A DNA stretch of 64,000 nucleotides, taken from the IMG/VR virus record IMGVR_UViG_3300023184_000027, positions 143,953 through 207,952 of that record, one strand, 5' to 3'. Below the pieces are notes generated by a model that was not told the origin of the DNA, ran no database searches, and was given only the letters and a program-made list of their open reading frames with translations. Numbering within the stretch: the stretch's first letter is position 1; each line of letters starts with the position of its first letter. Below, in pieces: positions 27,649 to 60,400 of this stretch. Both the position numbers and the translations under genes were made by a program.

Positions 27649-27667
27649 TATATTTTAATTTATTTTT

Positions 27668-29331: not shown

Positions 29332-29335
29332 TTTT

Positions 29336-34214: not shown

Positions 34215-34253
34215 TTTAATTCTTAATTTATTTATTTTTGTGTTAGTTTAATT

Positions 34254-44793: not shown

Positions 44794-45806
44794 TGAAAAA
44801 ATTATTTGTAATTGGGGCATACCCCAACACTAAAAAAAAGGAAGAAATTTTAAAACAAGAAATTTTATCATTAAAACATTTAGATTACGATATTATGATT
44901 GTTAGTCATTACCCGGTTTCCGAAGAAATCCAATCAATGGTTAATTTTTATTTTTACGATAAAAATCAAAAACTAACACCTCAACAAAACACAAACGGGG
45001 ACATGTTATCACCATATTTTTGGGCTGCTCAAGAATCCTTTTATGTTAAAGTATTTAATCAAAGACATGGATTACCAATTTGTCAAAACATGTATAATTC
45101 TTTTAAATTTTCCGAAATACAAAAATACGATTTTGTATTTTTTTTAGAAAACGATAATATTTTTAGTAAAGAAGATACCTTAAAGTTTGATGAGCTACTG
45201 GAAAATATGATATCAAACAATAAAAAATGTATTTTTTTCAAAACACCTATTCACACACAGGGGGATTTTAGATTTAGAGAAGGTGTAAACGCCTTTTATG
45301 AAACACAATTATTTGGTGTGACACCTCAATATTTTAATGAAATTTTCAAATTACCAATTAATGAAAAAGAATGGTTTGAATTTGGGATGGGATACACATT
45401 AGAAGAGTCTTTCTATTTAAAATTAAACATATATGAAGATAACTTTTTAATTATACCAGACTACTCTTTTAACTTTTTTAAAGAAAGTGAAATTAATCTT
45501 ATTAGGTCAGAATCATTTATATTAGAAGTTTTATATAACGAAAGTAATCCTTCTTCACCAATATTATATTGTGAGAATAATACCAAAAATAATGAAATAA
45601 AAAAAATATCTATAGAAATTAATAATATTGTAGAAAATAATGAAATACGCCCTTCACAATGGTTTTATAAAAAATTATCTTTAGACGGTAATGAATTAAC
45701 TATCACTGTTTTTGATGAAGATGGTAGCATTGATTTCATTAAAAAAGTTCATTTAATAGATGATAATTTAGAACAAATAAAAGAAAAAGGAATAATAATT
45801 TTTTAA
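44793..45806 (+). CDS. Uncharacterised GT-like protein (full-length copy)
   Basis: AYPNT..K, IMIVSHYPV, FLENDNIF; paralogous to the middle domain of 42043-44793. Confidence 0.6.
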   Translation: MKKLFVIGAYPNTKKKEEILKQEILSLKHLDYDIMIVSHYPVSEEIQSMVNFYFYDKNQKLTPQQNTNGDMLSPYFWAAQESFYVKVFNQRHGLPICQNMYNSFKFSEIQKYDFVFFLENDNIFSKEDTLKFDELLENMISNNKKCIFFKTPIHTQGDFRFREGVNAFYETQLFGVTPQYFNEIFKLPINEKEWFEFGMGYTLEESFYLKLNIYEDNFLIIPDYSFNFFKESEINLIRSESFILEVLYNESNPSSPILYCENNTKNNEIKKISIEINNIVENNEIRPSQWFYKKLSLDGNELTITVFDEDGSIDFIKKVHLIDDNLEQIKEKGIIIF

Positions 45807-45815
45807 TTAATTATG
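45083..45815 (+). repeat. Direct repeat copy 1 (~730 bp)
   Basis: Colinear with 48474-49205 up to and including the next ATG. Confidence 0.95.
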
Positions 45816-46718
45816 ATACAATATAAAAAAATGTTTATTGCGGGTGCCAATGGGATGTTAGGTACCACTTTACAAAGTTTAACAGATACTTCTCAATATC
45901 TTCTAACAGATAAAGATATAGATGGTGATGTACGTTATTGCGACATTAGAGATTTAAATCAAACTTCTAATATTGTGAAAGAATATAACCCTGATATTAT
46001 TTTAAATTTCGCAGCGTTAGTTGATTTAGAGTATTGTGAACAAGAAAAAGACGATTGTTACTTAACAAATACTATCGCATCTATTAATTTATTTAATTTA
46101 GCTAAAGACCTTAATATACCATATGTGTTTATTAGTACCGCAGGGATATTCGGTAATGATAAAGAATTTTATACTGAAGAAGATATTCCACATCCATTAA
46201 GTGCCTACGGAAAAAGTAAGTATTATACAGAACAGTTATTACAAAATCAATCCTACGAAAAATATTGGATATTTAGAGCAGGATGGATGATGGGTGGAGG
46301 ACCGTCCAAAGATAAAAAATTCGTAAATAAAATTATGAATCAAGTTAAATCCGGTGTTAAAGAACTTAATGTTGTTGATGATAAGCTAGGTGTACCTACT
46401 TATACAAAAGATTTTGCAAATTCAATATTGAGACATTTATCAGAAGAACTTCCTTATGGGTTATATAATATGGTAAGTTCCGGTGAGGCGAGTCGATATC
46501 AAACGGCGGTTGAAATAAATGAATTTTTACAATTAGGGTTAAAAATTAATAAAGTAGGAAGTGATTTTTTTTCAAAAGAATATTCAGCGCCTAGACCTTA
46601 TTCAGAGAAATTAATTAATAAATCATTAAACAATTTACATAAAAATTATATGAGAAATTGGAAAGATTGTTTACATGAATATTTATCTGAATTCTATAAA
46701 AATAAAAAAATCACATAA
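45813..46718 (+). CDS. rmlD: NDP-4-keto-6-deoxyhexose reductase (RmlD-like)
   Basis: GANGMLG, NFAA.VD...CE, ISTA.IF, PLSAYGKSK, GVPTYT.D, APRP. Confidence 0.75.
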   Translation: MIQYKKMFIAGANGMLGTTLQSLTDTSQYLLTDKDIDGDVRYCDIRDLNQTSNIVKEYNPDIILNFAALVDLEYCEQEKDDCYLTNTIASINLFNLAKDLNIPYVFISTAGIFGNDKEFYTEEDIPHPLSAYGKSKYYTEQLLQNQSYEKYWIFRAGWMMGGGPSKDKKFVNKIMNQVKSGVKELNVVDDKLGVPTYTKDFANSILRHLSEELPYGLYNMVSSGEASRYQTAVEINEFLQLGLKINKVGSDFFSKEYSAPRPYSEKLINKSLNNLHKNYMRNWKDCLHEYLSEFYKNKKIT

Positions 46719-46722
46719 TATT

Positions 46723-47385
46723 ATGAAAATAAAATTTACGATAAGTTCACGTAAATTAGGGTTTGAACAAACTTATCCTATTATAATTAAAAGTTTAATT
46801 GAAAATAATGTCCCACCACAAGACATATATTTTTTTGTTGGTGGGTACGATTCCATAACTCAAAGTATTACCGATGAAGGTGTTAATCTTATACAAGTTA
46901 ATCAAAATTCCATAGATTATACAGGTCTTATAGGTGTATTAGATTTAGATATTGTGTCAGATTATTGGGTTTTATTACATGACACATGTTATGTTGGACC
47001 TAACTTTTATAATCATATTATGTCTTACAATTATAATTATACCCCCGCCGTTGGATTAATTTTTGAGGAATGTTGTATGAATATTGGTGCTTATAGTTGG
47101 GAATATTTACAAAAAATAAAATCAAATTTATTAGAATACCGTAATACTGATTTTTCAGAAGAATCAATTCAGAAATGGAAAACAATTGGAATAGTTGATG
47201 AAGATAAGTTTTTATCTGAATATAATGTTGAAAATCATTATTGTGTATCATCACGAATACATAGTGGTCCTGTCGATATCTATAATACAGGTACACCTAG
47301 ACTAGTCGAATATTTTCCGGGTATAGATTTATACAAATTAAAGGCCAATTGGTACCGAAGAGAGATTTACGAATTAAGTGTATGA
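46723..47385 (+). CDS. Putative glycosyltransferase
   Basis: NSIDYTGLI, YWVLLHDTCYVG; operon context; start moved to ATG 46723. Confidence 0.55.
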   Translation: MKIKFTISSRKLGFEQTYPIIIKSLIENNVPPQDIYFFVGGYDSITQSITDEGVNLIQVNQNSIDYTGLIGVLDLDIVSDYWVLLHDTCYVGPNFYNHIMSYNYNYTPAVGLIFEECCMNIGAYSWEYLQKIKSNLLEYRNTDFSEESIQKWKTIGIVDEDKFLSEYNVENHYCVSSRIHSGPVDIYNTGTPRLVEYFPGIDLYKLKANWYRREIYELSV

Positions 47386-48497
47386 TAAAATACGATTTTT
47401 TAATAGTGGGTGCGGGTCTTTTTGGTAGTGTTTGCGCTAGAGAATTAACAGATAACGGATATAAATGTTTAGTTATTGATAAAAGAGAACATATTGGTGG
47501 GAACTGTTACACTGAAAATAGAGATGGTATAAACATACATATGTATGGACCACATATATTTCACACTTCAAATGAACGAGTTTGGGAATACGTAAATAAA
47601 TATATTTCATTTAATAATTACATATGTTCCCCTGTGGCAAATTATAAGGGAGAAATTTATTCTCTACCCTTTAGTATGTGGACATTTTCTAAAATGTGGG
47701 GAATCTCTTCACCAAAAGAAGCGATGGATATTATTGAAAAACAAAGTATCCATATTCAAAAAACCCCATCTAATTTAGAAGAACAAGCAATCAAAACTGT
47801 AGGTATTGATGTATATAATAAATTAATCAAAGAATATGTTGAGAAACAGTGGAAAAAATCACCTACAGAACTTCCATCTCAAATTATAAAAAGATTACCC
47901 GTAAGATTTACATACGATAATAATTATTTTTTAGACAAATATCAGGGAGTTCCAATTGGGGGGTACACTAATTTTTTTAATAAATTACTTGTAAATATTG
48001 ATGTCAATCTTGGTGTTGACTATTTAAAAGATTCTTTACCTTCCCATAATTTCACTATTTATACCGGACCTATAGATAAATTTTATAATTATGAATTTGG
48101 GGAATTAGAATATAAATCCACAAATTTTGTTCATAAAAAAATGAACACAACAAATTACCAAGGAACGGCTATTATGTCATTCACCGACAAAGAAACAATT
48201 TATACCAGAATTATTGAACACAAACATTTTGAAAATTCTATATCAAATATTTCTTGGATTACTTACGAGTACCCAATAGAATATAACGTACATGAGGTAG
48301 AACCACATTATCCCGTTAATGATGATAAAAACACATTGATTTATCAAAATTATAAAAAAATGGCAGATAAAGAAAAATCGGTTTTATTCGGAGGGAGATT
48401 AGCGGAATATAAATATTACGATATGCACCAAGTAATAGAATCAGCCTTAAACACTGTTGATAAAATATTAAAATCAAAATATGGTAAATTCGTTTAA
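47382..48497 (+). CDS. glf: UDP-galactopyranose mutase
   Basis: IVGAGLFG, HIGGNCY, YGPHIFHT, RLPVR, YQGVPIGGY, GRLAEYKYYDMHQ; start moved to ATG 47382. Confidence 0.93.
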   Translation: MIKYDFLIVGAGLFGSVCARELTDNGYKCLVIDKREHIGGNCYTENRDGINIHMYGPHIFHTSNERVWEYVNKYISFNNYICSPVANYKGEIYSLPFSMWTFSKMWGISSPKEAMDIIEKQSIHIQKTPSNLEEQAIKTVGIDVYNKLIKEYVEKQWKKSPTELPSQIIKRLPVRFTYDNNYFLDKYQGVPIGGYTNFFNKLLVNIDVNLGVDYLKDSLPSHNFTIYTGPIDKFYNYEFGELEYKSTNFVHKKMNTTNYQGTAIMSFTDKETIYTRIIEHKHFENSISNISWITYEYPIEYNVHEVEPHYPVNDDKNTLIYQNYKKMADKEKSVLFGGRLAEYKYYDMHQVIESALNTVDKILKSKYGKFV

Positions 48498-49205
48498 TTT
48501 TTCTGAAATACTAAATTATGATTTTGTCTTTTTTTTAGAAAACGATAATATCTTTAGTAAAGAAGATTCCTTAAAGTTTGACGTACTATTGGACGATATG
48601 ATTTTAAACAATAAAAAATGTATTTTTTTTAAAACACCTATCCATACACAGGGAGATTTTAGATTTAGAGAAGGTGTGGACTCCTTTTATGAAACACAAT
48701 TATTTGGCGTAACACCTAAATATTTTAACGAAATTTTTAAATTACCAACAAATGAAAAAGAATGGGTTAATTTTAACATGGGATACACATTAGAAGAGTC
48801 TTTTTATTTAAAATTAAACAGATATGAAGACAACTTTCTAATTATACCAGACTACTCTTTTAACTTTTTTAAAGAAAGTGAAATTAATCTTATTAGGTCC
48901 GAATCATTTATATTAGAAGTTTTATATAATGAAAGTAACCCTTATTCACCAATATTATATTGTGAAAATAATTCAAAATATAATGAAATTAAAAAAATAT
49001 CAATTAACATTAACAATGTTATTGAAAATAATGAAATACTTCCTTCACAATGGTTCTACAAAGCACTATCTTTAGATGGTGATAAATTAACTATAACCGT
49101 TTTTGATGAAGAAGGTAATACAGATTTTATTAAAAAGGTTCATTTAATTGATAATAATTTAGAACAAATAAAAGAAAAAGGAGTAATAATATTTAATTAA
49201 TTATG
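48474..49205 (+). repeat. Direct repeat copy 2 (~730 bp)
   Basis: Encoded peptide differs from copy 1 at about 32 of 238 residues (hand count). Confidence 0.95.
48481..49200 (+). CDS. N-terminally truncated duplicate of 44793-45806 (lacks first 99 aa); possibly non-functional
   Basis: Starts at the equivalent of Met100; frame still open. Confidence 0.7.
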   Translation: MVNSFNFSEILNYDFVFFLENDNIFSKEDSLKFDVLLDDMILNNKKCIFFKTPIHTQGDFRFREGVDSFYETQLFGVTPKYFNEIFKLPTNEKEWVNFNMGYTLEESFYLKLNRYEDNFLIIPDYSFNFFKESEINLIRSESFILEVLYNESNPYSPILYCENNSKYNEIKKISININNVIENNEILPSQWFYKALSLDGDKLTITVFDEEGNTDFIKKVHLIDNNLEQIKEKGVIIFN

Positions 49206-49748
49206 GCACACAAAAAACAACAAGAATTTTACGAAAGAGTAAAACAACATTTACCTCAATATTTTAGCGACGTAAAAGTACTAGATATAGGTTCGTTAGA
49301 TATTAACGGAAATAATAAACATTTTTTTAACCACCCATTTTATTATGTTGGGGTTGATTTAGCGGAGGGGCAAAATGTTGATGTTATTTGTCCGGGTCAT
49401 TTATACAATTCAGGGTTTTTATTTGATGTCGTTACATCATCTGAATGTTTTGAACATGATATGTATTATGCGAGAACACTACAAAATATGGTTAAACTAC
49501 TTAGACCAGGAGGATTAATGTTATTCACTTGCGCTTCAACAGGAAGACCTGAACATGGTACATTAAACGCAAATCCATTTGACGCACCATTTTTAGAGGG
49601 TATTGATGAAAAATGGTCTAACTATTATAAAAATTTAACAGAAGACGATGTTCGTTCAGCTATAGAAATTAATAATACTTTTGTAACATTTAACTTTGAA
49701 TATGAGCCAGAATCTTGTGATTTGTATTTTTGGGGTGTAAAAAAATAA
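49203..49748 (+). CDS. Class I SAM-dependent methyltransferase
   Basis: VLDIGSLDING, YVGVDL..G.NVD, FDVV.S.ECFEHD, LLRPGG. Confidence 0.85.
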   Translation: MAHKKQQEFYERVKQHLPQYFSDVKVLDIGSLDINGNNKHFFNHPFYYVGVDLAEGQNVDVICPGHLYNSGFLFDVVTSSECFEHDMYYARTLQNMVKLLRPGGLMLFTCASTGRPEHGTLNANPFDAPFLEGIDEKWSNYYKNLTEDDVRSAIEINNTFVTFNFEYEPESCDLYFWGVKK

Positions 49749-49756
49749 ATAATTAT

Positions 49757-51901
49757 ATGAGAATAACACAAGTAACTCCGGGTGTAATCCCAATACCCCC
49801 TAATGGATGGGGTGCCGTCGAAAAAATATTATGGTGTTACCATAACGAATTTAATTCTTTGGGACACGAATGCACAATAAAATATTTAAATGAGGCTTCT
49901 ACCGATAATTCGGATATAATACATATCCACATAGCTAATTTAGCTTTAGATGCTGCGGAAAGAGGGATTCCTTACATTTTTTCCTTACACGACCATCATG
50001 TTGTTCATTACGGGAAAGATTCGTTTAACTATCGCCAAAATTTAGAGGCAATACAAAAATCGGTAATTTCATTTTGTCATGCTGAATATTTAATTGACTA
50101 CTTTGACGGAACTGATAAATTATTTTATCTATCTCATGGGGTGGAAGTTGATTATTTTAAAGTTGCTGATTTATATAGGAAAGAACATAAATTGCTTTGT
50201 ATTGCAAATAATGGTATTGGTGGTGACGCATCGTTTGATAGAAAAGGGTTTAGGTATGCTATTGAGGCGGCTAAAAAATTAAATCTTCCAATAACAATCG
50301 CCGGACCAGAAAATAATAAATTATTTTTCCAACATCACCCTGATTTGTTAGAATATGAAAATTTAACATTATTATTAACCAACTTAAGTGAAGATGAAAT
50401 TTTAGAGTTATATAAATCACATTCAATATTTTTACATCCGTCAATATTAGAAGCTGGTCACCCAAATTTAACATTATTGGAAGCGGTCTCTTGTGGGTTA
50501 CCGGTTGTTGGAACTTATGAAGGGTCTCAAAAAATAGATGGGATGATTGTATCTGAAAGAAATTCTGATAGAGTTGCCGAATCAATATCTAAAATAATAA
50601 ATGAATATAAGAATTATGTTGATTTAACACAAAATAATAGAACCAAATTTGATTGGACAACTATCTGTAAAAGAATGGTTGATATGTATAAAGTTGTTAA
50701 TCTAATTAAAAAAGAATATTCTTCCGAAGAAACCAAAAATTTATTTATTGATAATTTTAATAATATTGTTAGGTCACCTATAATTACTCAAACAAAAACA
50801 GAAAGTGTTACACCAATTGTGGAAAAAATTAAACCAAATGTAAAATATAATTTTCATTTTGTTAATCAACCTTTTTTTGAAATATTAGGAGATAGCGATA
50901 AAAAATTTAATGTTGAATTTTACGATGAAGGTAATTTACATCATCACTCAGAATTATCGTCAAATATGTGGACTAAAGTAGGTAGAGAATACTTTACAAA
51001 TTGGTATATCAAAGTTTCTTGTGATAATGACATTGTTTTTGAATATAACCTTGATTTAACAAATAGGAGAGTTTTTATTTCTTTTGAATCTAGTTCATTA
51101 GGCGATAGTATTGCTTGGATTCCATATGTGTTAGAATTTAAAAACCAACATAATTGTGTTGTAATTGTATCAACATTTTGGAATAAATTATTTAAAAAGT
51201 CTTATCCCGAATTGGAATTTGTTGAGCCAGGTGCAACCATCCATAATTTATTTGGTTTATATAGAATTGGTTGGTTTGAAAACGAAACAAAAGAACCTTT
51301 TTATCCTAACACAATACCATTACAAAAAACGATAACAAATCTCTTAAAATTAGAACACACAGAAATTAAACCAACTCTTGACTTCGTACCTAAATCAAGA
51401 CCTATAGTTGAGAAGTATATTACGATAGCGGATGAATCAACCGCCGGATTAAAACTATGGAATAACTTAAATGGGTGGAAAGAACTTATTGAGTATTTAA
51501 CTAAATTAGGATATAAAATTATTAACATATCTAAACATGGTGGGAATTATAAAAATGTCGCAAAATTAAAAGACACATCAATAGAGAATACGATGAACTA
51601 TATTCACCATAGTGAATTTTTCATAGGATTATCAAGTGGGTTATCTTGGCTATCATGGGCGTTAGGTAAACATGTTGTTATGATTTCTAACTTTACCGAA
51701 TCTGACCATGAATTTACATCAAACTGTACTAGAATTACAAATGATTCTGTGTGTAATGGATGTTGGAATAAATCTGAATATCGGTTTGACCGTGGTGATT
51801 GGAACTGGTGTCCCGAAAATAAAGGAACTCCTCGTCAATTTGAGTGTCATAAATCAATAACCTCTGAAATGGTAATAAAACAAATACAACATTTATTATA
51901 A
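49757..51901 (+). CDS. GT4-like domain fused to TibC/Aah-type (BAHT) protein O-heptosyltransferase
   Basis: PPNGWGAVE, EAGHPNLTLLEA; SSSLGDSIAW.PY, FIGLSSGLSWLSW, VVMISNF, CNGCWN...WCP...FEC (4-Cys motif); start moved to ATG 49757. Confidence 0.8.
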   Translation: MRITQVTPGVIPIPPNGWGAVEKILWCYHNEFNSLGHECTIKYLNEASTDNSDIIHIHIANLALDAAERGIPYIFSLHDHHVVHYGKDSFNYRQNLEAIQKSVISFCHAEYLIDYFDGTDKLFYLSHGVEVDYFKVADLYRKEHKLLCIANNGIGGDASFDRKGFRYAIEAAKKLNLPITIAGPENNKLFFQHHPDLLEYENLTLLLTNLSEDEILELYKSHSIFLHPSILEAGHPNLTLLEAVSCGLPVVGTYEGSQKIDGMIVSERNSDRVAESISKIINEYKNYVDLTQNNRTKFDWTTICKRMVDMYKVVNLIKKEYSSEETKNLFIDNFNNIVRSPIITQTKTESVTPIVEKIKPNVKYNFHFVNQPFFEILGDSDKKFNVEFYDEGNLHHHSELSSNMWTKVGREYFTNWYIKVSCDNDIVFEYNLDLTNRRVFISFESSSLGDSIAWIPYVLEFKNQHNCVVIVSTFWNKLFKKSYPELEFVEPGATIHNLFGLYRIGWFENETKEPFYPNTIPLQKTITNLLKLEHTEIKPTLDFVPKSRPIVEKYITIADESTAGLKLWNNLNGWKELIEYLTKLGYKIINISKHGGNYKNVAKLKDTSIENTMNYIHHSEFFIGLSSGLSWLSWALGKHVVMISNFTESDHEFTSNCTRITNDSVCNGCWNKSEYRFDRGDWNWCPENKGTPRQFECHKSITSEMVIKQIQHLL

Positions 51902-51902
51902 C

Positions 51903-51928
51903 AAAAAACCCCAATTAAGGGGTTTTTT
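51903..51928. terminator. Bidirectional intrinsic terminator
   Basis: AAAAAACCCC-AATTAA-GGGGTTTTTT between convergent genes. Confidence 0.85.
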
Positions 51929-52803
51929 TATTGTTTTCTAATTGAGTCTATAATTTGATTTACATCAAAAATTTCATTTAAATCATTATACGGAATACTT
52001 GTCATATCTTGGAATAATAAATATTTTGAATAATGACTATGGTCTAACATAACCTCTTTTGTTGGAGTATTTGCCGTTATATTTGTATTGCTATGGTATC
52101 CAAAAACATTGGGGTTAGTTCCAACCCAAGTAACAACAGATGGAAGATTTAATGATGCTGCTATGTGCATAACGCTTGAATCAATTAACAATCGTTTTTT
52201 AGATAAACTCAATAAAATAGCAATACTTCTAAAATCATCTAACGCTTGTAAAGTGTCTTCATAAACAAATTGGTCTTCTCTTTTAATATGAAGAATCGCG
52301 TAATCATTTTTAAAATATCTAATCACTTCCTCTATTGTTGGTTGAGGTATATCACGAGTCCAACTATATTTTAAAGGTTGTCCGGCGGCACCACCATTTG
52401 GTTGGATAACCATAATTGGTTTATCTACTTTATAGAATTGTGTGAAGTATTGTTTTTCGGCTTCAGATATAAAAATTTCAGGTAATTCTCCTCTATAATC
52501 AACACCGAACATTTCACACCAAATCTGAATTAAGTGTTTGGATTCTGTAATATAATCTGATGTTTGATACGGTTCTCCAACAAACACTTTAGATTCTTGG
52601 TCCATAATGTATTTAGCGTAAATACCCGATAATTGACCGTGGTTTAATACCTTGTTCATATTTGGATTGTTAATAAAAACATCCGGATAACCTGACACGA
52701 CAATTATATAAGAGTCAGGATATTGTCGTCTAATTGCTTTTAATACTGCGGTTCCCATTACACTTTTTCCGAGACCACCTTCTATTGAAAATATTATATT
52801 CAT
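51928..52803 (-). CDS. GT9-like (heptosyltransferase-fold) glycosyltransferase
   Basis: GGLGKSVMGTAVLKAIRRQYP, VFINNP, IDSSVMHIAASLNLPSVV. Confidence 0.75.
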   Translation of the reverse strand: MNIIFSIEGGLGKSVMGTAVLKAIRRQYPDSYIIVVSGYPDVFINNPNMNKVLNHGQLSGIYAKYIMDQESKVFVGEPYQTSDYITESKHLIQIWCEMFGVDYRGELPEIFISEAEKQYFTQFYKVDKPIMVIQPNGGAAGQPLKYSWTRDIPQPTIEEVIRYFKNDYAILHIKREDQFVYEDTLQALDDFRSIAILLSLSKKRLLIDSSVMHIAASLNLPSVVTWVGTNPNVFGYHSNTNITANTPTKEVMLDHSHYSKYLLFQDMTSIPYNDLNEIFDVNQIIDSIRKQ

Positions 52804-52815
52804 ATTTGTTTTTTT

Positions 52816-53262
52816 TTAATTGTTTAATATTTTTTTTATACATTCATTAACACCAATGTTTGTGGTGTCAATATTAATAAAGTTTTCCGTAGGTGATTCA
52901 TAGTCATCAACAAATAAATTTTCCCTACCTCTAATTTCGGATGTGTGAACATAAATCTCTGTAATTTTTCTACCCATCTTTTTCTTAAATTCTTCTCTTT
53001 GGTCTTTATAAGGAGATACTAATGAAACAACAACATGAACACTTTGAGAACTGAGATATTGAGACATTTGTTGAGCGAGTTGGATATTTTTTCTTCTACC
53101 CTCTTCAGAATAATCTTTATTATCAAATAAATCTCTAATATCATCACCGTCAATGTGGAAACATAATTCTCTTTTAAAATCAATTAGTGATGAACATAAT
53201 TCTTTTCCCAATGTTGTTTTACCGGCACCCGGTTGACCTGTTATCCAATATATGTTAGACAT
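52816..53262 (-). CDS. cysC: Adenylyl-sulfate (APS) kinase, compact
   Basis: WITGQPGAGKTT, IDGDDIR, YSEEGRRKNI, VVVSLVSPY, YESP; start moved to ATG 53262. Confidence 0.8.
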   Translation of the reverse strand: MSNIYWITGQPGAGKTTLGKELCSSLIDFKRELCFHIDGDDIRDLFDNKDYSEEGRRKNIQLAQQMSQYLSSQSVHVVVSLVSPYKDQREEFKKKMGRKITEIYVHTSEIRGRENLFVDDYESPTENFINIDTTNIGVNECIKKILNN

Positions 53263-54076
53263 ACCCAAAATAATCGTAAAACCATTTATAATGATTCTTA
53301 ATATTGGTGGATAATTCATAACCCAATATATCAAGATAATCATCTGGCATTTTTTTAAATTCTTTTCTCAATACATGGTCACCAAATATACCGTGAACAA
53401 CATCATTTTCGTTTGTTACCTGTTCAATAGATTCAAAATTGTGTCCTTGATACATAGGTTGTCCAATGTAGTCGTAAAATCGTTTTATTTCCCTTTCAGG
53501 GTTATCCATTAAATCCTCGTATCTAATGAATAATATTTTAGAGTGAAGGTTTTGTTGGAAGATATCTTGTAATCTATCTACCGTCACACCAACCGGTGGA
53601 CCACTAGCCCAAATATCAACTCGTTTGTTTACAGTAGTTCCAACTAATTCGTTTGGGTTCTGTATATGACTTTCTTTGTGGGGATTTTTTCTAAAGTTCT
53701 TCTCCATAGAGGAGTAGACACATCTTAAGTCTCTAATCATACAAACAATCTTTGGGTCTTCTTTGAATAAACTCAATAGATTGTAGTTAATACCCCACCC
53801 TCGACTCTTGTCTAACACATAGGGTTTATCTGTTAATTCCTCAAAGAATCCTTGAATCCCTTTTCTACAAAAATTAATGAATGCCTTCTCCATTAATTTG
53901 GGGTCTTGAGCTCTAATTTCTTGAGAACCATTATAATGATTTTTTGCTCCGGATACCAACTCAATTAATCCTGATGTTGGGGTTACGTAAAATTGGGGAT
54001 TTTGTCCGATTAAATTTTGAAATAGGGTTGAACCTGCTCTAGGTAGAGAAGAGTTAAAAAAGATTATCTTATCCAT
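53255..54076 (-). CDS. PAPS-dependent sulfotransferase
   Basis: 5'-PSB SLPRAGSTL, DKSRGW, 3'-PB IRDLRCVYSS, IRYEDL..PE. Confidence 0.88.
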   Translation of the reverse strand: MDKIIFFNSSLPRAGSTLFQNLIGQNPQFYVTPTSGLIELVSGAKNHYNGSQEIRAQDPKLMEKAFINFCRKGIQGFFEELTDKPYVLDKSRGWGINYNLLSLFKEDPKIVCMIRDLRCVYSSMEKNFRKNPHKESHIQNPNELVGTTVNKRVDIWASGPPVGVTVDRLQDIFQQNLHSKILFIRYEDLMDNPEREIKRFYDYIGQPMYQGHNFESIEQVTNENDVVHGIFGDHVLRKEFKKMPDDYLDILGYELSTNIKNHYKWFYDYFGYV

Positions 54077-54100
54077 AAATTATAACATATATTTGTGTTA

Positions 54101-54129
54101 ATAATAAATGGATATTGAATTGTAGTAAA
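54101..54129 (-). promoter_or_regulatory. sigma70-type promoter (TTTACT-17-TATTAT) for sulfotransferase-cysC-GT9
   Basis: Spacing counted directly. Confidence 0.45.
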
Positions 54130-54160
54130 CCCTATTAGGGCAAATAATAATGGGGTTTGT

Positions 54161-55102
54161 TTAAAAGGCAATTATCATAACTATACCGTCACCACCGTCA
54201 CCACCTTTTCCGCTAGTTCCGTTATTGGCGTTTCCTCCGGCTCCACCACCACTTCCTATTCCACCTTTTCCTCCGTTACCAGCCACACCACCGGATGTAT
54301 AGGCGTTTCCACCTCCTGCGCCTCCTACTGAGAAAAATGGTTTCCAAGATGTTATACCATCGGCACCGTTTCCACCTGTAGTGCTTCCACCAACACCACC
54401 TATAATAGATGGAGTTAATGACGTAATTGATGAAGTAGAGATAAGACTTCCACCGTTAAAAGCGGTTGCTGTTCCATTATAAGGCCCTCCACCACTCCCT
54501 GAATGTAATAAGAATGAATTTCCAAAAATATTAACATCAGGGACGGCTGTTGAAATCCCTCCGGTTTGAGAATTAGTTCCTTGTGTAGATATAAAATTAG
54601 TGAGACCAATTAAATAATTATTGGATAAACTAGATGCAGGTGTACCGGCACCTGACACGTTTGTTCCTCCATTCGTGGAACCAAGACCACCAAAAAAACT
54701 AACGGTACGAGCCGAAGTATTTTGAGAATCAAGTTGGGATGCTAAAAACACACCTGAAGATTCTCCCGCATTTCCGGCATTGAACCCTGTCGTCGGGGTT
54801 GAAACACCAACACCACCGATACCACCTTTACCTACTTTTATGTATAAAGTATTAGGGATTAAATTTGAATTAATTAATGCTCTATTAATTGAGCCAGTCC
54901 CACCGCCAAAATTATTTATTGTATTTACATTTAAAACCGCATTATTTCCTGAAGCTCCACCACCACCACCATCAATACTAATTATATAGATAAAACTGCA
55001 GTTTCTTGGTTTTTGCCAAGTTTGATAACTAGTAGAACCTGCGTCAGCATAAAATATTTTTATGTCTTCTTGTGAGTTTGGTATATGAAATAAATCTATC
55101 AT
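54161..55102 (-). CDS. Glycine-rich tail-fibre-type protein, paralog 3
   Basis: TWQKPRN...GGGGG N-term; GGDGGDGIVMI C-term. Confidence 0.75.
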   Translation of the reverse strand: MIDLFHIPNSQEDIKIFYADAGSTSYQTWQKPRNCSFIYIISIDGGGGGASGNNAVLNVNTINNFGGGTGSINRALINSNLIPNTLYIKVGKGGIGGVGVSTPTTGFNAGNAGESSGVFLASQLDSQNTSARTVSFFGGLGSTNGGTNVSGAGTPASSLSNNYLIGLTNFISTQGTNSQTGGISTAVPDVNIFGNSFLLHSGSGGGPYNGTATAFNGGSLISTSSITSLTPSIIGGVGGSTTGGNGADGITSWKPFFSVGGAGGGNAYTSGGVAGNGGKGGIGSGGGAGGNANNGTSGKGGDGGDGIVMIIAF

Positions 55103-55105
55103 AAA

Positions 55106-55975
55106 TTAAAAGTTTGTTGTTATCATAATTAGTCCGTTACCTCCTTTTCCACCATTTCCTGCAGTTGTAGTTCCTGCCCCACCACCGCCACCACCGCATC
55201 CTGGTGCTCCGTTTCCTCCATTTCCTCCTGTAGTACCACCACCTCCACCTCGTCCTCCAAATAGGAAAAGTGTTGGCGTATATAATATAGCACCGTCAGA
55301 ACCTCTTGTATTTACTGGTGTGGCAACTATGGATGGAAATAGTGGTGCCGAACCGGCGTTAAATCCAGACCCAGTAGATGTTCCACCACCACCACCAGCG
55401 GCAATTGTAAAAGATGCATAAGATGTACTAGTTGCCGCCGCTGTTGAGCTAGCAGTACCTGCCAACCCAACACTCGCAATAAAGGTTCCTAAATTTAAAA
55501 ACACACCATTTGATGTGGTCGCAACAGTTTCTGCAAGTCCCCCAACAACTGATACGGTTGAACCGGCAGAACCTCCTGTTGCGGCAACGGCACCTGAAGT
55601 ACAAACTATGTTGGAAATGTTTGAGATATCCGGTATTAGACACACATATGATTTTGTTGCGGAACTTCCTGCTGTGACTACACCTGAAGCACCACCTATA
55701 CCACCAGCACCACCAGTTCCTGGTAGGATATATAGAATATTGGGAAGTAAAGACGCTTGTACAACTAATTTTACGTAACCACCTGTTCCACCACCCGCAC
55801 CACCACTTCTAGCTGCGGCTGCTTGAAATCCTCCTCCTCCTCCGGCACCAGCACCGAGAACAAAGAAAGATACTATTTTAGCGTTTCTTGGTTTTACCCA
55901 AGTTTGCCAAGAACCAGGGTTTTGGAATATCTGCGTATCACTACTACTATTTTGAAAATATGATAAATCTAACAT
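55106..55975 (-). CDS. Glycine-rich tail-fibre-type protein, paralog 2
   Basis: TWVKPRNAK...LGAGAGGGGG; GGKGGNGLIMI. Confidence 0.75.
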   Translation of the reverse strand: MLDLSYFQNSSSDTQIFQNPGSWQTWVKPRNAKIVSFFVLGAGAGGGGGFQAAAARSGGAGGGTGGYVKLVVQASLLPNILYILPGTGGAGGIGGASGVVTAGSSATKSYVCLIPDISNISNIVCTSGAVAATGGSAGSTVSVVGGLAETVATTSNGVFLNLGTFIASVGLAGTASSTAAATSTSYASFTIAAGGGGGTSTGSGFNAGSAPLFPSIVATPVNTRGSDGAILYTPTLFLFGGRGGGGGTTGGNGGNGAPGCGGGGGGAGTTTAGNGGKGGNGLIMITTNF

Positions 55976-55976
55976 A

Positions 55977-56849
55977 TTATGAAATTACTGTTATTATGAC
56001 TAATCCGTCACCTCCGTCACCTCCGTTACCGGCAACAACAGAACCGGCACCTCCACCACCGCCTCCACAGCCGTACCATCCATTACCTCCTGTTCCACCT
56101 GTTCCTGTAGTAATTCCGGCACCGCCTGCTCCTCCTGTCCCACACAATGTAGAAAGATTTCCGTAACCAGAATCACCATTTTGTCCCGCAGTCACACCAC
56201 CATTCACTTGAGAAGTTAGTATAGATGTTGCTGATGTTATATTTCCTCCTGTTCCAAAGACAGAAGCTGTCTTTCCTCCACCACCAGCACCACCCATAAC
56301 AATGTTTGTTCCTAAAGCGGCTTGAGATGTTCCGTTAGTACCTGTGTTGGCACCACCAGCTGACCCAGCAACTCCAGCAACTGAAGTAAATAACCCTAAA
56401 CCTGTAAATGTAGGACTTACAGCGATAGTAGGGGCGGTTCCACCAACTCCTGCTGAGGTTCCTCCATTTCCACTACTTTGAGACGACTTACATAACGTTA
56501 ATGTTGAACCATTATCAACAGACACGTAAGATATGCTACCAGAACCTCCGGTACCATTTGATACTATTCCACCTTTCCCACCTTTCCCAACAAATATATA
56601 TAGAATATCTGGTAATAAAAAGGCTGGTACAATCATTCTCACCATTCCCGCCGAAGCACCACCACCCGCACCAGTTACTCCCGCAGCACCAATAGTACAG
56701 TGTCCACCACCTGCTGCACCACCTAAACAAAATATCTCTAAAAATTTTGCATTACGAGGTTTTTGAAATGGTTGATATTCACCTGTCGCATAAAATGTAT
56801 AGGTAGATTGTGTATTTGTATTGGTTGTTATGTTAAAAACATCTATCAT
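55977..56849 (-). CDS. Glycine-rich tail-fibre-type protein, paralog 1
   Basis: FQKPRNAK...LGGAAGGG; GGDGGDGLVII. Confidence 0.75.
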   Translation of the reverse strand: MIDVFNITTNTNTQSTYTFYATGEYQPFQKPRNAKFLEIFCLGGAAGGGHCTIGAAGVTGAGGGASAGMVRMIVPAFLLPDILYIFVGKGGKGGIVSNGTGGSGSISYVSVDNGSTLTLCKSSQSSGNGGTSAGVGGTAPTIAVSPTFTGLGLFTSVAGVAGSAGGANTGTNGTSQAALGTNIVMGGAGGGGKTASVFGTGGNITSATSILTSQVNGGVTAGQNGDSGYGNLSTLCGTGGAGGAGITTGTGGTGGNGWYGCGGGGGGAGSVVAGNGGDGGDGLVIITVIS

Positions 56850-57028
56850 TATTCAGCCCAAGTTGGTTTAGGTGGATTAGAGTCCACAACATATCCCTCA
56901 ATAGGAAAATCGGGAGATATAAGAGTATTTCCGTTTAAATCAGTTAACCTAACTAAATTCCCATTACTTATTTCTTGATACGCTTGAAAATCCCATCCAA
57001 GAGTATATTGTATTAAAATATATTCCAT
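56849..57028 (-). CDS. Small 59-aa protein missed by the ORF track (possible fibre assembly factor)
   Basis: MEYILIQYTLGWDFQAYQEISNGNLVRLTDLNGNTLISPDFPIEGYVVDSNPPKPTWAE; TAATG coupling at both ends. Confidence 0.75.
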   Translation of the reverse strand: MEYILIQYTLGWDFQAYQEISNGNLVRLTDLNGNTLISPDFPIEGYVVDSNPPKPTWAE

Positions 57029-57444
57029 TAGTATTTTCCTCCAATAACACTTACAAAGTAACCCGCAGCAACTGTTGTACCAAGAGTCACATTTAGTTTA
57101 TATCCCGCGGGTAAGGCAAAGTTAAGAGGTAATTCATACACGGCTAATGCTGCCACCTCGGATAATGTTGTCGCTGCTAAAGTAATCTCATCAAATAATA
57201 TGTTATTTCCTGCCGTACTATTTGCTGACCCATTATTAATGAATACCCTTGCCACGGTGGCGATATTAGTCCCCGCTGCTCTGAATCTTATTCTTTGAAC
57301 AAACCCTCCGTTTGTGGCGTCTGCTGTGAAGCAAGTAAGAACAGTACCTGTTCCGTCTTTTGCGGTGTTAAGTGTTGTTATTGCTGTTGTTCCCCATTGA
57401 ACATCTCCAGCTAATGAGAAGATAGGTGCGGTATTTGCTGCCAT
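57028..57444 (-). CDS. Small Ala/Thr-rich beta-sandwich virion protein
   Basis: MAANTAPIF...TVARVFINNG...LFDEITL...LPAGYKL; fibre operon context. Confidence 0.65.
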   Translation of the reverse strand: MAANTAPIFSLAGDVQWGTTAITTLNTAKDGTGTVLTCFTADATNGGFVQRIRFRAAGTNIATVARVFINNGSANSTAGNNILFDEITLAATTLSEVAALAVYELPLNFALPAGYKLNVTLGTTVAAGYFVSVIGGKY

Positions 57445-57488
57445 TTTGTATTGTTTTTATTTTAAATTTAGTGTTATTTTTATAATTG

Positions 57489-60400
57489 TCAAAACATATT
57501 TTGAAATCCTGTTGAAAATACTTGTAATAATCCTAATGTAAGAATAGTTGGAGCTGGACTTGTTCCGCTTGTTCCCGCAATTCCTGATGTTCCTGATGAA
57601 CCACTACTACCAATACCACTAGTTCCTGATGAACCACTATTACCAATACCACTAGTTCCTGAAGAACCACTACTACCAGGTGTTGTTGTAACTAATAAAC
57701 CGTTTGAACCAACACAGATTGAACATCCTGATGAACCTGTGAAACTACAAACAGATAAATCATTAACAAATGTAGTACAACTTCTGTTTGCTGTGATACA
57801 ACTACCTATAACATTAGCGTGTTGAAATGATGCCGATATTGTGTTATTTCTACCACCAAGTATTGATGAATAAACTGAACAAGCGCTATTACATAAACCA
57901 CCGGCAATCGTTGATGAACATCCACAAGTTATATTACAAGCACCACCACCAATAAACATAAAACAAGCTCCTGAACTGGCTGAAGTACAGTTTTTATAAC
58001 CACCTGATATTGTCGAACAACCATTGTTACCAACATTACTATTACATTTTCCACCGCCAATTGTTGAATTAGAACCAGAAGCAGTATTTGAACTACCACC
58101 GCCAATTGTTGAACTACTACCACCAGCAGTATTTCCAAGACCTCCACCAATTGTTGAACAAGCTCCCGTTGCACAGTTTCTATATCCACCACCGATGGTT
58201 GATAATCTACCAGCATCACAACAAGTGGTTGTTCCTGTTAAGTCCCCTGTTATTGCGTTAAATGTTCCACCTGATGTATTGTGTCCAATACCTCCACTGA
58301 TTGTGGCACCTAAAGAACAACATTCGTTTGTTGGTGATTGAATAACATTTCTTTGTCCACCACCAATAAATGAGAATCTAGCGGTTATTGTATTACAACC
58401 TCCACCAACAATTGTTGATGTACATCCAGTTGTGACATTACAACATCCACCTCCAATAACTGAATAATTCGATGATGTAGTATTACAAAATCCTCCACCA
58501 ATAACTGAGTTGCCTCCAGATACTTTATTACCACATCCACCCCCGATTGCAGAACCACTTGAATTTATGCAAATACAATTAGTACATCCTCCAGCGATAG
58601 TTGTAAAGGAACTAGTGTCAATAGAATTAGATTTACCACCACCAATAAACATACCAACTCCACCCGAACCCCCACAAGCTATATTACAACAACCACCACC
58701 AATAGTTGACGAACAATTATTACCTGTTATAATGTTACAATAACCACCACCAATTGTTAATAAAGCGGCTCCACACGATTTATTACAATAACCACCACCA
58801 ATAACAGAGTTACTGGTGCTAATTAAATTTTTTTGACCACCGGCGATAACTGAACAAGCTCCTGTCACACAGTTTCTATATCCACCACCAATGGTTGATA
58901 ATTTACCAGCATTACAACAAACAATTGTCCCTGATAAAATACCTGTTGATGAGGTAAATGTTCCTCCTGAAGTATTATGTCCAATACCTCCACCGATTGT
59001 TACACCTAATGAACAACATTCGTTTGTTGGTGATTGAATTATATTTCTATGACCACCGTTTATATTTGAGAATTTTGAGTTTGTTATATTACAATAACCA
59101 CCAAGAATTGATGAGCTATTACCTGAAATGCTATTTCTATATCCACCACCAATAAATGACCTATCGGAAAATGTATTATTTGATTCACCACCACCAATAG
59201 TTGAAACATTACCTATTGTGCAATTATTACAACCACCTCCAATAAATGAGAAATTACAACAACTAACGTTACTCTTACCACCAACAACTGATGACAAACA
59301 ACCTTTTGAGCAGTTTCCATAACCACCACTAATTGTTGAACAATTTCCGCAACTAACATTACATTGACCACCACCAATAAATGAACTTTCACCAATAACA
59401 GTATTAGACTGCCCACCAGCTATGGTACCTAAACCATATGGTACACATATTTTATTATTGTATCCTCCACCAATGGTATTACTACCAACTGGGTTAAAAG
59501 TACCTGTATTTGAGAAAATAACATTACAGCAACCACCACCAATAGTATTGGGTCTAATTGCGTAGCTAGAATTATCAACAGTAAAATTACAAATAATATT
59601 TCTATTACCACCAACAATTGTTGAGTATTTGGCAACTACAGTGTTATTTTCACCACCACCAATAAATGATGTCTGCCCTGATGCTATATTACCTTGACCA
59701 CCAACAACCACAGATGCGTATCCAAATGATGTGTTACGACGATATCCAATATTAGAATTGGGTTTTCCACCACCAACAAATGAAAATGTTCCAGATGCTA
59801 AATTTTGAGAACCTCCGACAACTGTTGAAAAACATGCTGATGCGGTATTTCCGCTACCGGCTAATGCGGCTGAAAAACATGATGTTGCGGTATTACCAAC
59901 ACCACATCTAATGGTTGAGTTAACACCTGTTCCGGTAATGATTATACTATCACCACCTCCACCTGAGCTTGTTCCGCTAGACCCAGATATACCTGATGTT
60001 CCAGCCACTCCATTTGCCCCTGATGTTCCTGAAGAACCAACACCACTTGTTCCACTAGAACCTGCAATACCTGATGTTCCTGATGAACCACTTACGCCAA
60101 TACCACTTGTTCCACTAGAACCTGCAATACCTGATGTTCCTGAAGAACCACTTACGCCAATACCACTTGTTCCACTAGAACCTGCGGCTCCTGATGTTCC
60201 GCTTGTTCCTCTAGTACCAGACGCTCCTGACGTTCCTGAAGAACCACTATTACCAGTACCACCTGATGTTGTTACCAATAAACCATTTGCTCCAACACAG
60301 ATTGAACATCCTGATGAACCTGTGAAACTACAAACAGATAAGTCATTTACAAATGTTGTACAAGCTCTGTTTGCTGTTATATTACTACCAATAATATTAG

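Follow-up and report, generated by a model that had tools for sequence, protein, structure and literature searches.

The window analysed here, a stretch of 64,000 nucleotides (positions 143,953 to 207,952) from the virus record IMGVR_UViG_3300023184_000027 of a lake-water jumbo phage, carries a tightly linked trio of minus-strand genes: a PAPS-type sulfotransferase, a shortened APS kinase (cysC-like) and a GT9-like GT-B glycosyltransferase. The ATG of the kinase overlaps the stop of the sulfotransferase by 8 nt, a gap of 12 nt separates the kinase from the GT9-like gene, and a strong bidirectional intrinsic terminator, with a 10-bp stem, a loop of 6 and U-runs on both strands (-13.9 kcal/mol, z -3.0), closes the unit. 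Upstream on the same strand lie three tandem Gly_rich_2 paralogues and a collagen-like tail fibre, while a convergent island of glycan-synthesis genes lies on the other side of the terminator. The coordinates of all features are collected in the table below. The observation made in the earlier note, a linked sulfation module directly downstream of the fibre operon with a short-lid APS kinase and no ATP sulfurylase in the window, was confirmed, with the exception of its sigma70-like promoter, for which support is only partial.

Features of the sulfation cassette and its surroundings, in positions of the 64,000-nucleotide window
Feature	Coordinates	Strand	Size
PAPS-type sulfotransferase	53255..54076	-	273 aa
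Short-lid APS kinase (cysC-like)	52816..53262	-	148 aa
GT9-like GT-B glycosyltransferase	51928..52803	-	291 aa
Conserved 5' region of the cassette (candidate promoter or leader), preceded by a weak hairpin	54077..54141	-	
Sigma70-like site of the earlier note, TTTACT-17-TATTAT	54101..54129	-	
Bidirectional intrinsic terminator between the cassette and the convergent glycan island	51903..51928	.	
GT4 domain fused to a TibC/Aah-family protein O-heptosyltransferase domain (homologues suggest a start near 49757)	49730..51901	+	723-aa ORF
Soluble glycan-synthesis island: GT4, 337-aa protein, RmlD-like reductase, 236-aa protein, UDP-galactopyranose mutase, 239-aa protein, SAM methyltransferase	42043..49748	+	GT4, 916 aa
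Three tandem Gly_rich_2 paralogues, candidate acceptors	54161..56849	-	313, 289 and 290 aa
Collagen-like tail fibre	57489..63869	-	2126 aa
Protein with long Thr-Pro linkers, divergent from the glycan island, second candidate O-glycosylation acceptor	40851..41969	-	372 aa

The sulfotransferase matched PF13469 (1e-14, 55.8 bits against a cut-off of 27), PF00685 (1.2e-11, 44.9 bits against 22) and phrog_27463 (5.5e-36). In an alignment of 42 homologues, S10, L11, P12, R13, G15, S16, K90, R115, D116 and S123 are invariant, comprising the 5'-phosphosulfate-binding (5'-PSB) loop S10-L-P-R-x-G-S and the 3'-phosphate-binding (3'-PB) R115...S123 motif. Its AlphaFold model (pLDDT 90.7) showed Z scores of 12-20 to many PAP-bound sulfotransferases, and the fold is closest to the tyrosylprotein sulfotransferases TPST1/2 (Z 19.5-20.3 over about 247 of 273 residues; Foldseek 1e-8), against Z 14-16 for carbohydrate and other sulfotransferases. 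The GT9-like protein scored 21 bits against PF01075, just under the cut-off of 22, and gave no NCBIfam hit, so the family profile was not passed. However, its AlphaFold model (pLDDT 94.7) matched GT9 structures first (3tov 2e-13), then WaaF, WaaC and TibC (1psw scored 1.3e-12), its C-terminal IDSSVMHIAA aligns with the WaaC donor-site VDTGLSHLTA, and D208, S209 and H213 of this donor-site motif are invariant. At the N-terminus the family has an invariant G12-K13, with Lys where WaaC has its catalytic Asp (Asp13) of the G-D motif; this correspondence was read by eye and does not come from a computed alignment, which leaves the matter of the catalytic residue undecided. At least 1338 homologue clusters of the GT9-like protein were found, which JGI names ADP-heptose:LPS heptosyltransferase.

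The kinase matched PF01583 (3.9e-19, 69.6 bits against a cut-off of 21.1), and all 19 PDB sequence hits are APS kinases, the best being 7yq0 at 5.5e-15. On the other hand, it scored below the NCBIfam equivalog cut-offs (TIGR00455, 73.6 against 138.7; NF002059, 74.4 against 244), so that by profile score alone membership could be argued either way. A 175-aa ORF listed mechanically at this position over-extends, as the family alignment starts at the Met of the 148-aa protein. In an alignment of 22 viral and 2 canonical bacterial CysC sequences, G14 and K15 of the P-loop, the DGD motif (D38, G39, D40) and R43, R56 and N59, residues that bind APS in our reading, are invariant. The reduced lid claimed in the earlier note is real and family-wide: about 4 plus 19-23 residues of the KGLYKKA...FTG(I/V)D segment are absent in all viral members relative to the two bacterial sequences, leaving only (E/D)IRGRE...YExP, and since the relatives are 142-160 aa this is not a truncation. 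Conversion of APS and ATP to PAPS was not assayed, and activity of the lid-less kinase is not assured. The dN/dS values were 0.09 for the sulfotransferase, 0.08-0.10 for the kinase and 0.06-0.07 for the GT9-like gene, indicating purifying selection.

The sigma70-like promoter proposed in the earlier note matches 9 of 12 positions, but the region holds 21 such sites against 20.9 expected by chance, thus the call is no better than chance and is not evidence on its own. In addition, the phage uses no Shine-Dalgarno sites and its upstream regions carry TAnnTTTG motifs, which points to a host that may not use sigma70-type promoters; no exact TAnnTTTG was found by eye in the 84-nt gap before the sulfotransferase, where the genome's recurrent TATATTTAT motif occurs only in a degenerate form. 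Independent support for a private 5' region was obtained by comparison with relatives. The last ~55 nt before the sulfotransferase ATG is far more conserved than synonymous sites: the last 40 nt differ at 1 of 40 positions (6 of 65 over the whole 5' region) from four relatives whose upstream genes are unrelated, while synonymous sites in the coding region differ at 0.23-0.29, as measured against the 95%-identical relatives, two of which are among those four. Homology of RNA-library contigs of a relative also stops at 54136, and the preceding hairpin has -6.8 kcal/mol here and -11.5 kcal/mol (z -4.8) in the related locus L028. The cassette therefore carries its own 5' region.

Linkage of cysC and the sulfotransferase in relatives had been named in advance as a point on which the sulfation reading should be examined, and it proved to be conserved. 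Among 80 related viral loci, the GT9-like gene is co-oriented beside the sulfotransferase in 70 and the kinase in 55, in at least six different gene orders that keep them adjacent. In a set of 93 loci, 23 lack the kinase yet keep the sulfotransferase, and at least 169 viral loci were found in total. A fibre-like gene lies directly upstream of the cassette in 26 of 41 non-redundant loci, and the 2126-aa fibre of the window, which matched 17 PHROG families with tail-fibre ones best (e.g. phrog_5073, 1.2e-56), is homologous to the fibre-like cluster (c3) that precedes the cassette in relatives. Contigs from four metatranscriptome libraries carry relatives of the cassette, and one contig spans all three gene junctions, but these contigs do not show strand, starts or true transcription. 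In cultured phages, by contrast, a megablast of 51000-57500 against GenBank phages gave no match, and the only sulfotransferase homologues among 50,697 GenBank phage records, those annotated in Synechococcus phages S-SKS1, S-SRM01 and S-SCSM1, are merely 25-30% identical, while the kinase and the GT9-like protein have almost no hits. S-SKS1 has no annotated APS kinase or GT9-like neighbour, and its neighbourhood is unannotated, so nothing was learned there about the acceptor. A scan of bacterial genomes returned 19 hits, all on MAG contigs, of which the low-GC ones repeat the phage synteny, while the high-GC ones show the sulfotransferase beside adhesin- or fibre-like genes without a GT9-like gene and with no informative pathway.

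The absence of ATP sulfurylase stated in the earlier note for the window holds and can be extended. Neither PF01747 nor PF01507 was found in the 208-kb record, and five 95-100% complete relatives of 318-385 kb have no PF01507 match and no PF01747 match over the cut-off, with one weak sub-threshold hit (10.8 bits, E 0.037). Because no sulfurylase is encoded, this phage needs APS from the host. The host itself has not been identified, and the one MAG that holds a related phage contig has no detectable ATP sulfurylase, thus host APS is not guaranteed for every relative. In most relatives the kinase is followed by a 132-aa NMNAT-like nucleotidyltransferase, which travels with it in 52 of 53 loci but is not present in this window. 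We considered this protein as an ATP sulfurylase, but PF01747 reached only 10.8-22 bits, below the cut-off of 24.3, its family profile found NMNATs and PPATs and no sulfurylase in the PDB, and its atlas clusters are named NMNAT or cytidylyltransferase-like, so the idea rests on context alone.

The neighbourhood links the cassette to protein glycosylation. The C-terminal domain of the convergent neighbour (residues 395-721) is of the TibC/Aah (BAHT) protein O-heptosyltransferase type, scoring 276.3 bits against TIGR04414 (3.7e-82), over the equivalog cut-off of 200, and follows a GT4 domain (PF00534, 5e-14, residues 170-305). The same domain sits beside the cassette in four complete relatives (276-286 bits in these and in this genome), while 0 of 14 control genomes are over the cut-off; it lies within 8 kb in 15 of 41 non-redundant loci, and in two loci a stand-alone TibC-like gene, the GT9-like gene and the sulfotransferase are consecutive. 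No BLASTP similarity was detected between the GT9-like protein and the TibC-like domain. The glycan island matched PF00534, PF04321 (7e-50), PF03275 (1.2e-66) and PF13489, together with PHROG families, and no membrane-like segment was found in any of its genes. As to a heptose pathway, a GmhA-like gene occurs only in two relatives. Ser/Thr-rich candidate acceptors flank the cassette and island: the Gly_rich_2 paralogues (PF21722, 1.7e-5, 4.6e-11 and 6.9e-6; phrog_2683, minor tail protein) have 23-27% Gly, about 20% Ser+Thr and only about 2% Tyr, while the Thr-Pro-linker protein has 23% Thr.

Taken together, we propose with moderate confidence that this is a conserved phage sulfation cassette. 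In this view, the short-lid APS kinase would convert host-made APS into PAPS, the translationally coupled sulfotransferase would use that PAPS, and the GT9-like glycosyltransferase, its most constant partner, would add or extend the sugar unit that is sulfated. With its own 5' region and terminator at the end of the fibre gene block, the cassette is probably expressed with the late structural genes, and it most likely works with the convergent island of soluble enzymes, which together would build a sulfated O-glycan in the cytoplasm on virion fibre proteins, with the Gly/Ser/Thr-rich paralogues, the collagen-like fibre and the Thr-Pro-linker protein as candidate acceptors. The analysis itself establishes the gene identities at the level of domain, motif and fold, the conserved linkage, the purifying selection and that no ATP sulfurylase was found, whereas kinase activity despite the missing lid, a glycan as the acceptor and the virion as its carrier are our inferences. 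PAPS production plus sulfotransfer is well supported as the function of the cassette. The interpretation offered in the earlier note was thus partly supported: that the three genes form one functional cassette, and that cysC here most likely serves a sulfotransferase and not sulfur assimilation, is supported, while its claim that the phage's own glycan or fibre is the target was strengthened but no acceptor is shown, and its polyanionic surface is speculation. Complexes were not predicted, as we make no claim of binding.

Alternatively, the cassette and the island might remodel the host envelope during infection by sulfating or heptosylating lipopolysaccharide, capsule or exopolysaccharide, thereby blocking superinfection or preventing progeny from sticking to debris. 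GT9 enzymes classically act on the LPS inner core, in line with the JGI name of the family, soluble glycosyltransferases can also act on host lipid-linked intermediates, the weak best named sequence relative of the sulfotransferase is the glycan sulfotransferase NoeE, and fibre and receptor-modifying genes often cluster in phages. However, this seems unlikely, since no flippase, polymerase, initiating transferase or any other membrane protein is in the island, the neighbour is of a protein O-heptosyltransferase type and not of an LPS type, and linkage to fibre genes is conserved; lysogeny evidence was neither looked for nor seen in the window. A further possibility, which we regard as less likely but as a live rival, is that the sulfotransferase is a tyrosylprotein sulfotransferase that directly sulfates a phage or host protein such as a fibre or adhesin, with the GT9-like enzyme modifying the same protein independently. 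The fold match, 3.5-4 Z units above the next family, the R...S spacing of the 3'-PB motif, which is the same as in TPST2, and the high-GC MAG homologues without a GT9-like gene fit this reading, although the fold match fits direct protein sulfation as well as glycan sulfation. On the other hand, by manual alignment an invariant Thr (T34) stands at the position of the TPST catalytic Glu, and in the absence of a residue-level structural alignment assignment to the TPST / RaxST type was left undecided; few PF13469 members other than TPSTs are among the solved-structure matches, so the ranking may only reflect family membership. Moreover, the strongest conserved partner is a glycosyltransferase and the flanking Gly-rich proteins are poor in Tyr.

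It is improbable that the acceptor is a small molecule, a nucleotide-sugar precursor or glycosylated phage DNA and that the position near fibre genes is incidental. While sulfotransferases of this fold also act on polyketide and lipid intermediates (CurM, Ols, Stf), all enzymes here are soluble, and relatives encode thymidylate-synthase-family genes that could belong to base-modification pathways, no thymidylate-synthase homologue is in the 208 kb of this record, which does not settle the point for DNA modification, no known DNA-glycosylation enzyme family was seen in the window, and linkage to fibre genes and to a protein O-glycosyltransferase is conserved. Similarly improbable is that the kinase is not an APS kinase but, with the NMNAT-like nucleotidyltransferase, makes another 3'-phospho-ADP-activated or ADP-activated donor, for example for the GT9-like enzyme, with the sulfotransferase drawing on host PAPS. 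The deleted lid, the low equivalog scores, the occurrence of the kinase-nucleotidyltransferase pair without the sulfotransferase in other glycan islands and the loci that lack the kinase speak for it, but the invariant P-loop, DGD and R43/R56/N59, the PDB hits, the coupling to the sulfotransferase in this window and the lack of a nucleotidyltransferase there speak against it. Finally, that cysC is a classical auxiliary metabolic gene boosting host assimilatory sulfate reduction, as freshwater phage cysC, transcribed in lakes, has been interpreted (PMC10914622; bioRxiv 10.1101/2021.01.05.425418), is very unlikely here, since no cysH, cysD/N or sat was found over the cut-offs in this record or in five complete relatives, the gene overlaps a sulfotransferase gene and keeps that linkage across at least 55 loci, and the remaining short viral cysC loci lie in glycan islands.

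Several systems resemble parts of this arrangement. In rhizobial Nod-factor sulfation, a glycan sulfotransferase of the PF13469 type (NodH or NoeE) is genetically linked to its own APS-kinase activity, with dedicated NodPQ securing PAPS for one specific sulfation, and NoeE is the only named NCBIfam hit of the phage enzyme (4e-5, far below its cut-off); however, NodPQ includes ATP sulfurylase, the phage kinase lacks the lid, the context is viral and next to fibre genes, and sequence similarity is very weak. In mycobacteriophages, phage-encoded glycosyltransferases near structural genes decorate virion proteins with glycans (Freeman et al. 2023, cited in PMC12619734), with no sulfation described there and in a different host phylum, whereas here the neighbour is of TibC/Aah type and nothing is shown experimentally. 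The TibC/Aah autotransporter O-heptosyltransferases (structures 4rap, 4rb4) are cytoplasmic, soluble enzymes that glycosylate Ser in beta-helical repeats and share their fold with the GT9-like protein, but here the domain is fused to GT4 and phage-encoded, and the acceptor would be a fibre and not an autotransporter. The human and tick TPST1/2 (5wrj, 3ap3, 8w5z) share the P-R-x-G-(S/T)-T type of 5'-PSB loop, yet are only 13-16% identical to the phage enzyme, which has no membrane anchor. Freshwater and marine phages, often with large genomes, carry a cysC (Kieft et al., 10.1101/2021.01.05.425418; Chen and Banfield 2024, PMC10914622), but those papers assign it to assimilatory sulfate reduction and contain no mention of sulfotransferases.

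A phage-encoded sulfation pathway did not turn up in the literature we could search. Viral cysC is reported as an assimilatory gene that shapes lake sulfur cycling, but in this lineage it is wired to a sulfotransferase, so those flux inferences would not apply here. The cassette is small, soluble and abundant and therefore amenable to expression, and it may yield a minimal APS kinase and new sulfotransferase specificities. A bolder and doubtful possibility is that phages of this widespread freshwater and marine group assemble virions whose fibres carry sulfated O-linked glycans, started by a TibC-like protein heptosyltransferase and finished by the GT9-like enzyme and the sulfotransferase, which would be the first sulfated bacteriophage particles, and part of what is counted as viral cysC sulfur-cycling genes in lakes would then be virion-decoration machinery. 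In relatives, though not in this window, the nucleotidyltransferase travelling with the kinase might even be a minimal sulfate adenylyltransferase, which would make the cassette a complete miniature PAPS synthase for hosts without sulfate activation. If the acceptor is the virion, sulfated fibres would be a new kind of phage surface chemistry, bearing on adsorption, aggregation, particle stability and recognition.

The 207,952-bp IMG/VR virus record, of which the window forms the last 64 kb, is linear and was rated 71% complete by CheckV. It encodes a tail sheath, a DNA polymerase and a helicase, so it is a large tailed phage with a contractile tail, and the cassette DNA was found in lake-water and freshwater metagenomes from at least eight studies. 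Three observations bear on the host. Among 91 upstream regions of the whole genome (G000), there are no Shine-Dalgarno sites (0% AGGAG/GGAGG, and 2% of the 4-mers against 3.9% background), TAnnTTTG motifs lie in 20 regions, and a recurrent TATATTTAT motif, about 8-fold enriched in upstream regions, sits 12-28 nt before start codons, at a fixed 12-14 or 20-28 nt; these may be phage-specific and Bacteroidota-type promoter signals. In addition, a 132-kb contig (locus L097) binned in a Sediminibacterium MAG (genome G006) repeats the phage synteny in the order gene cluster c5, sulfotransferase, kinase, nucleotidyltransferase, c7, GT9-like gene, c11...c12, and is therefore probably a phage contig binned with a possible host. 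A Bacteroidota host is likely by inference from these data. Several very large ORFs elsewhere in the window have few or no family hits, and a 415-aa glycosyltransferase (phrog_24687, 2.8e-168) and a methyltransferase lie between them; these genes were not studied.

The earlier note described three linked genes for a sulfotransferase, a short APS kinase with a reduced lid and a GT9-like protein, with their own sigma70-like promoter and no ATP sulfurylase, and apart from the promoter everything it had seen was confirmed. All three genes are real and lie on the minus strand (see the table). The sulfotransferase passes both Pfam sulfotransferase models, keeps an invariant 5'-phosphosulfate loop (S-L-P-R-x-G-S), K90 and an R115...S123 3'-phosphate motif across 42 homologues, and its model (pLDDT 90.7) is a sulfotransferase fold. 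The kinase gene starts inside the last codons of the sulfotransferase gene with an 8-nt overlap, and its product hits PF01583 at 3.9e-19, while all its PDB sequence hits are APS kinases. Alignment with 21 viral homologues and two canonical bacterial CysC showed that it keeps the P-loop, DGD, R43, R56, N59 and the SP motif, but lacks about 4 plus 19-23 residues that form the canonical lid; the relatives are 142-160 aa, so the short form is the family norm. The third protein scores 21 bits on PF01075, against a cut-off of 22, while its model (pLDDT 94.7) matches GT9 structures first and its C-terminal motif aligns with the WaaC donor site. A terminator with a 10-bp stem and U-runs on both strands (-13.9 kcal/mol, z -3) separates the cassette from a convergent gene.

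Coordinates of the features described in the window and in related loci
Feature	Location	Strand	Length
Sulfotransferase	54076-53255	-	273 aa
Short-lid APS kinase	53262-52816	-	148 aa
GT9-like protein	52803-51928	-	291 aa
Terminator	51903-51928		
GT4 domain fused to TibC/Aah-type O-heptosyltransferase domain	49730-51901	+	
Protein with long Thr-Pro linkers	40851-41969	-	372 aa
Neighbour with Fib_succ_major domain	38737-40779		
Three tandem Gly_rich_2 paralogues	54161-56849	-	
Stretch covered by similar RNA-library contigs	51700-54136		
Very large ORFs	16500-22643, 30684-38723	-	2047, 1176 and 1489 aa
Glycosyltransferase (415 aa) and methyltransferase	26965-30583		
NMNAT-like nucleotidyltransferase, related locus L009	L009:4646-5050		
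NMNAT-like nucleotidyltransferase, related locus L090	L090:8422-8817		
NMNAT-like nucleotidyltransferase, contig L097	about 9734		
DUF2061 gene, related locus L090	L090:8814-9251		
DUF2061 gene, related locus L014	L014:12687-12992		
Kinase-nucleotidyltransferase ORF, related locus L056	L056:6133-6480		115 aa
Split thymidylate-synthase-family gene, relative G001	G001:5332-7607		

The promoter proposed in the note, TTTACT-17-TATTAT, matches 9 of 12 positions, but such sites are as frequent as in shuffled sequence (21 against 20.9); on its own it is worth nothing, the more so if the host is a Bacteroidota. A better argument for a private 5' region comes from four related contigs that have entirely different genes upstream, yet differ at only 1 position in the last 40 nt before the ATG and at 6-11 in the last 65 nt, while synonymous sites of the adjacent genes differ at 0.23-0.29 against the 95%-identical relatives. 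A hairpin precedes this segment, weak here and strong in the closest complete relative. Contigs from four metatranscriptome libraries (runs X17-X20), one of them labelled marine, carry 85-97% identical relatives of the cassette, and one 680-nt contig spans all three gene junctions; this is compatible with expression in nature but is not proof. Contigs of a relative in an RNA library lose similarity at 54136. The three tandem Gly_rich_2 paralogues precede the cassette here, whereas relatives with 95%-identical cassette genes (loci L028, L003 and L002) have unrelated genes there (a 726-aa ORF in L028), and GC drops from about 41% to about 32% at the junction, which looks like fibre-module swapping next to a fixed cassette. 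So the cassette travels with its own leader or promoter, the nature of which is unknown.

The linkage of the three genes is meaningful. At least 169 viral contigs encode a relative of the sulfotransferase, and among the best 80 of them, which were examined, the GT9-like gene lies nearby on the same strand in 70 and the kinase in 55. The gene orders differ, with sulfotransferase-kinase-GT9-like in 34, GT9-like-sulfotransferase in 16, sulfotransferase-GT9-like-kinase in 7, GT9-like-sulfotransferase-kinase in 7, and others, and linkage that survives rearrangement argues for a shared function. All three genes are under strong purifying selection, with dN/dS of 0.06-0.10. The core pair is the sulfotransferase plus the GT9-like gene, while the kinase is a frequent accessory. 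The GT9-like family has at least 1338 clusters in public metagenomes; in contrast, among 50,697 GenBank phage records only 25-30% identical sulfotransferases appear, in three Synechococcus phages and single-virus genomes, and the kinase and the GT9-like protein are almost absent there.

As for the source of APS, neither type of ATP sulfurylase (PF01747, or CysD-type PF01507) and no CysH was found in this record, and five relatives of 318-385 kb, rated 95-100% complete, have no PF01507 match and no PF01747 match over the cut-off, the one weak PF01747 hit among them (10.8 bits) falling on a small nucleotidyltransferase. This phage must therefore use host APS, as the earlier note inferred. The same result excludes the usual reading of viral cysC as part of an assimilatory set.

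That small nucleotidyltransferase belongs to an NMNAT-like family of 131-136 aa, with the motifs GRWQPLHxGH, KNPFT and ISATKIR, which follows the short APS kinase in 52 of 53 loci of relatives, often with overlapping stop and start and usually with a gap of 22 nt or less; among the 24 loci without the kinase it occurs only once. The pair also occurs without the sulfotransferase, inside other glycan islands. A 115-aa ORF in locus L056 joins the P-loop start of the kinase to the C-terminal part of the nucleotidyltransferase, and looks like a deletion remnant in a lineage that kept the sulfotransferase and the GT9-like gene. A DUF2061 protein often accompanies the pair as a separate small gene in phage relatives, and DUF2061 is fused to the N-terminus of a canonical CysC in one Bacteroidetes MAG (locus L116, G008:C77), an unexplained association of DUF2061 with PAPS synthesis. 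A nucleotidyltransferase next to an APS kinase recalls PAPS synthase, and the Sediminibacterium MAG that holds such a phage contig has no detectable ATP sulfurylase, the rest of that MAG having no other APS kinase and no CysD/CysH or Sat over the cut-offs. The two genes might be a PAPS-synthase-like pair; however, homology points to NMNAT and does not support the sulfurylase idea, since PF01747 reaches 22 bits at best and the family profile finds only NMNATs and PPATs in the PDB. The gene is absent from the window, from G000 and from the closest relatives of this window.

While the gene identities, at the domain, motif and fold level, and their conserved linkage are shown, what is sulfated is not shown; the evidence points to a glycan on a protein, probably a virion protein. 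First, the convergent neighbour is a GT4 domain fused to a domain that passes the NCBIfam equivalog model for TibC/Aah autotransporter O-heptosyltransferases (276 bits, cut-off 200), which are cytoplasmic enzymes that glycosylate serines of beta-helical proteins. The same domain lies beside the cassette in four complete jumbo-phage relatives, and in two loci a stand-alone copy, the GT9-like gene and the sulfotransferase are consecutive; our literature searches found no phage-encoded enzyme of this family. Two complete relatives (G002 and G003) encode a GmhA-like sedoheptulose-7-phosphate isomerase (188 bits, just under the cut-off), which hints at phage-driven heptose supply, while in G001 a thymidylate-synthase-family gene is split into pieces about 1 kb apart, possibly by an intervening element. 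Second, upstream of the convergent gene lies a run of soluble sugar enzymes, comprising GT4, an RmlD-like reductase, UDP-galactopyranose mutase and a methyltransferase, none of which has a membrane-like segment, so the island lacks the flippase, polymerase and initiating transferase of a lipid-linked pathway. Third, fibre genes flank the island on both sides, with the three Gly/Ser/Thr-rich Gly_rich_2 paralogues and a 2126-aa collagen-like fibre on one side, and on the other the protein with long Thr-Pro linkers, which has 23% Thr and long TPTPT-type linkers, is divergently placed next to the island and looks like a mucin-like O-glycosylation substrate; its neighbour at 38737-40779 has a Fib_succ_major domain. 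In relatives, a homologue of the large fibre directly precedes the cassette in 26 of 41 non-redundant loci.

Alternatively, the sulfotransferase might sulfate a protein directly, since its fold is closest to tyrosylprotein sulfotransferases (TPST), at Z 20 against 14-16 for the others. That ranking may only reflect shared family membership, and by manual alignment the TPST catalytic Glu position holds an invariant Thr; still, direct protein sulfation cannot be excluded.

Two papers treat viral cysC, mostly from freshwater and marine phages with large genomes and transcribed in lakes, as an assimilatory sulfate-reduction gene, and neither mentions a sulfotransferase (PMC10914622; bioRxiv 10.1101/2021.01.05.425418). 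Of the published viral cysC, 62 are in PMC10914622. Literature searches combining sulfotransferase with phage terms returned nothing relevant. A paper on a new lineage of large aquatic Bacteroidota phages notes several glycosyltransferases and raises virion glycosylation, but not sulfation; whether this phage belongs to that lineage was not examined. Phage glycan or virion modification, and a dedicated PAPS supply for a sulfotransferase, are already known, and the cassette differs from the published view of viral cysC in that its kinase is linked to a sulfotransferase.

Taken together, the interpretation offered in the earlier note, that the phage diverts host APS to sulfate its own glycan or fibre, is supported in part. 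A virion glycan is the best-supported but unproven acceptor, and we propose it only tentatively. On the other hand, a PAPS-making, sulfotransferring cassette that is not an assimilation gene set is well supported, and we hold this part of the reading with high confidence.
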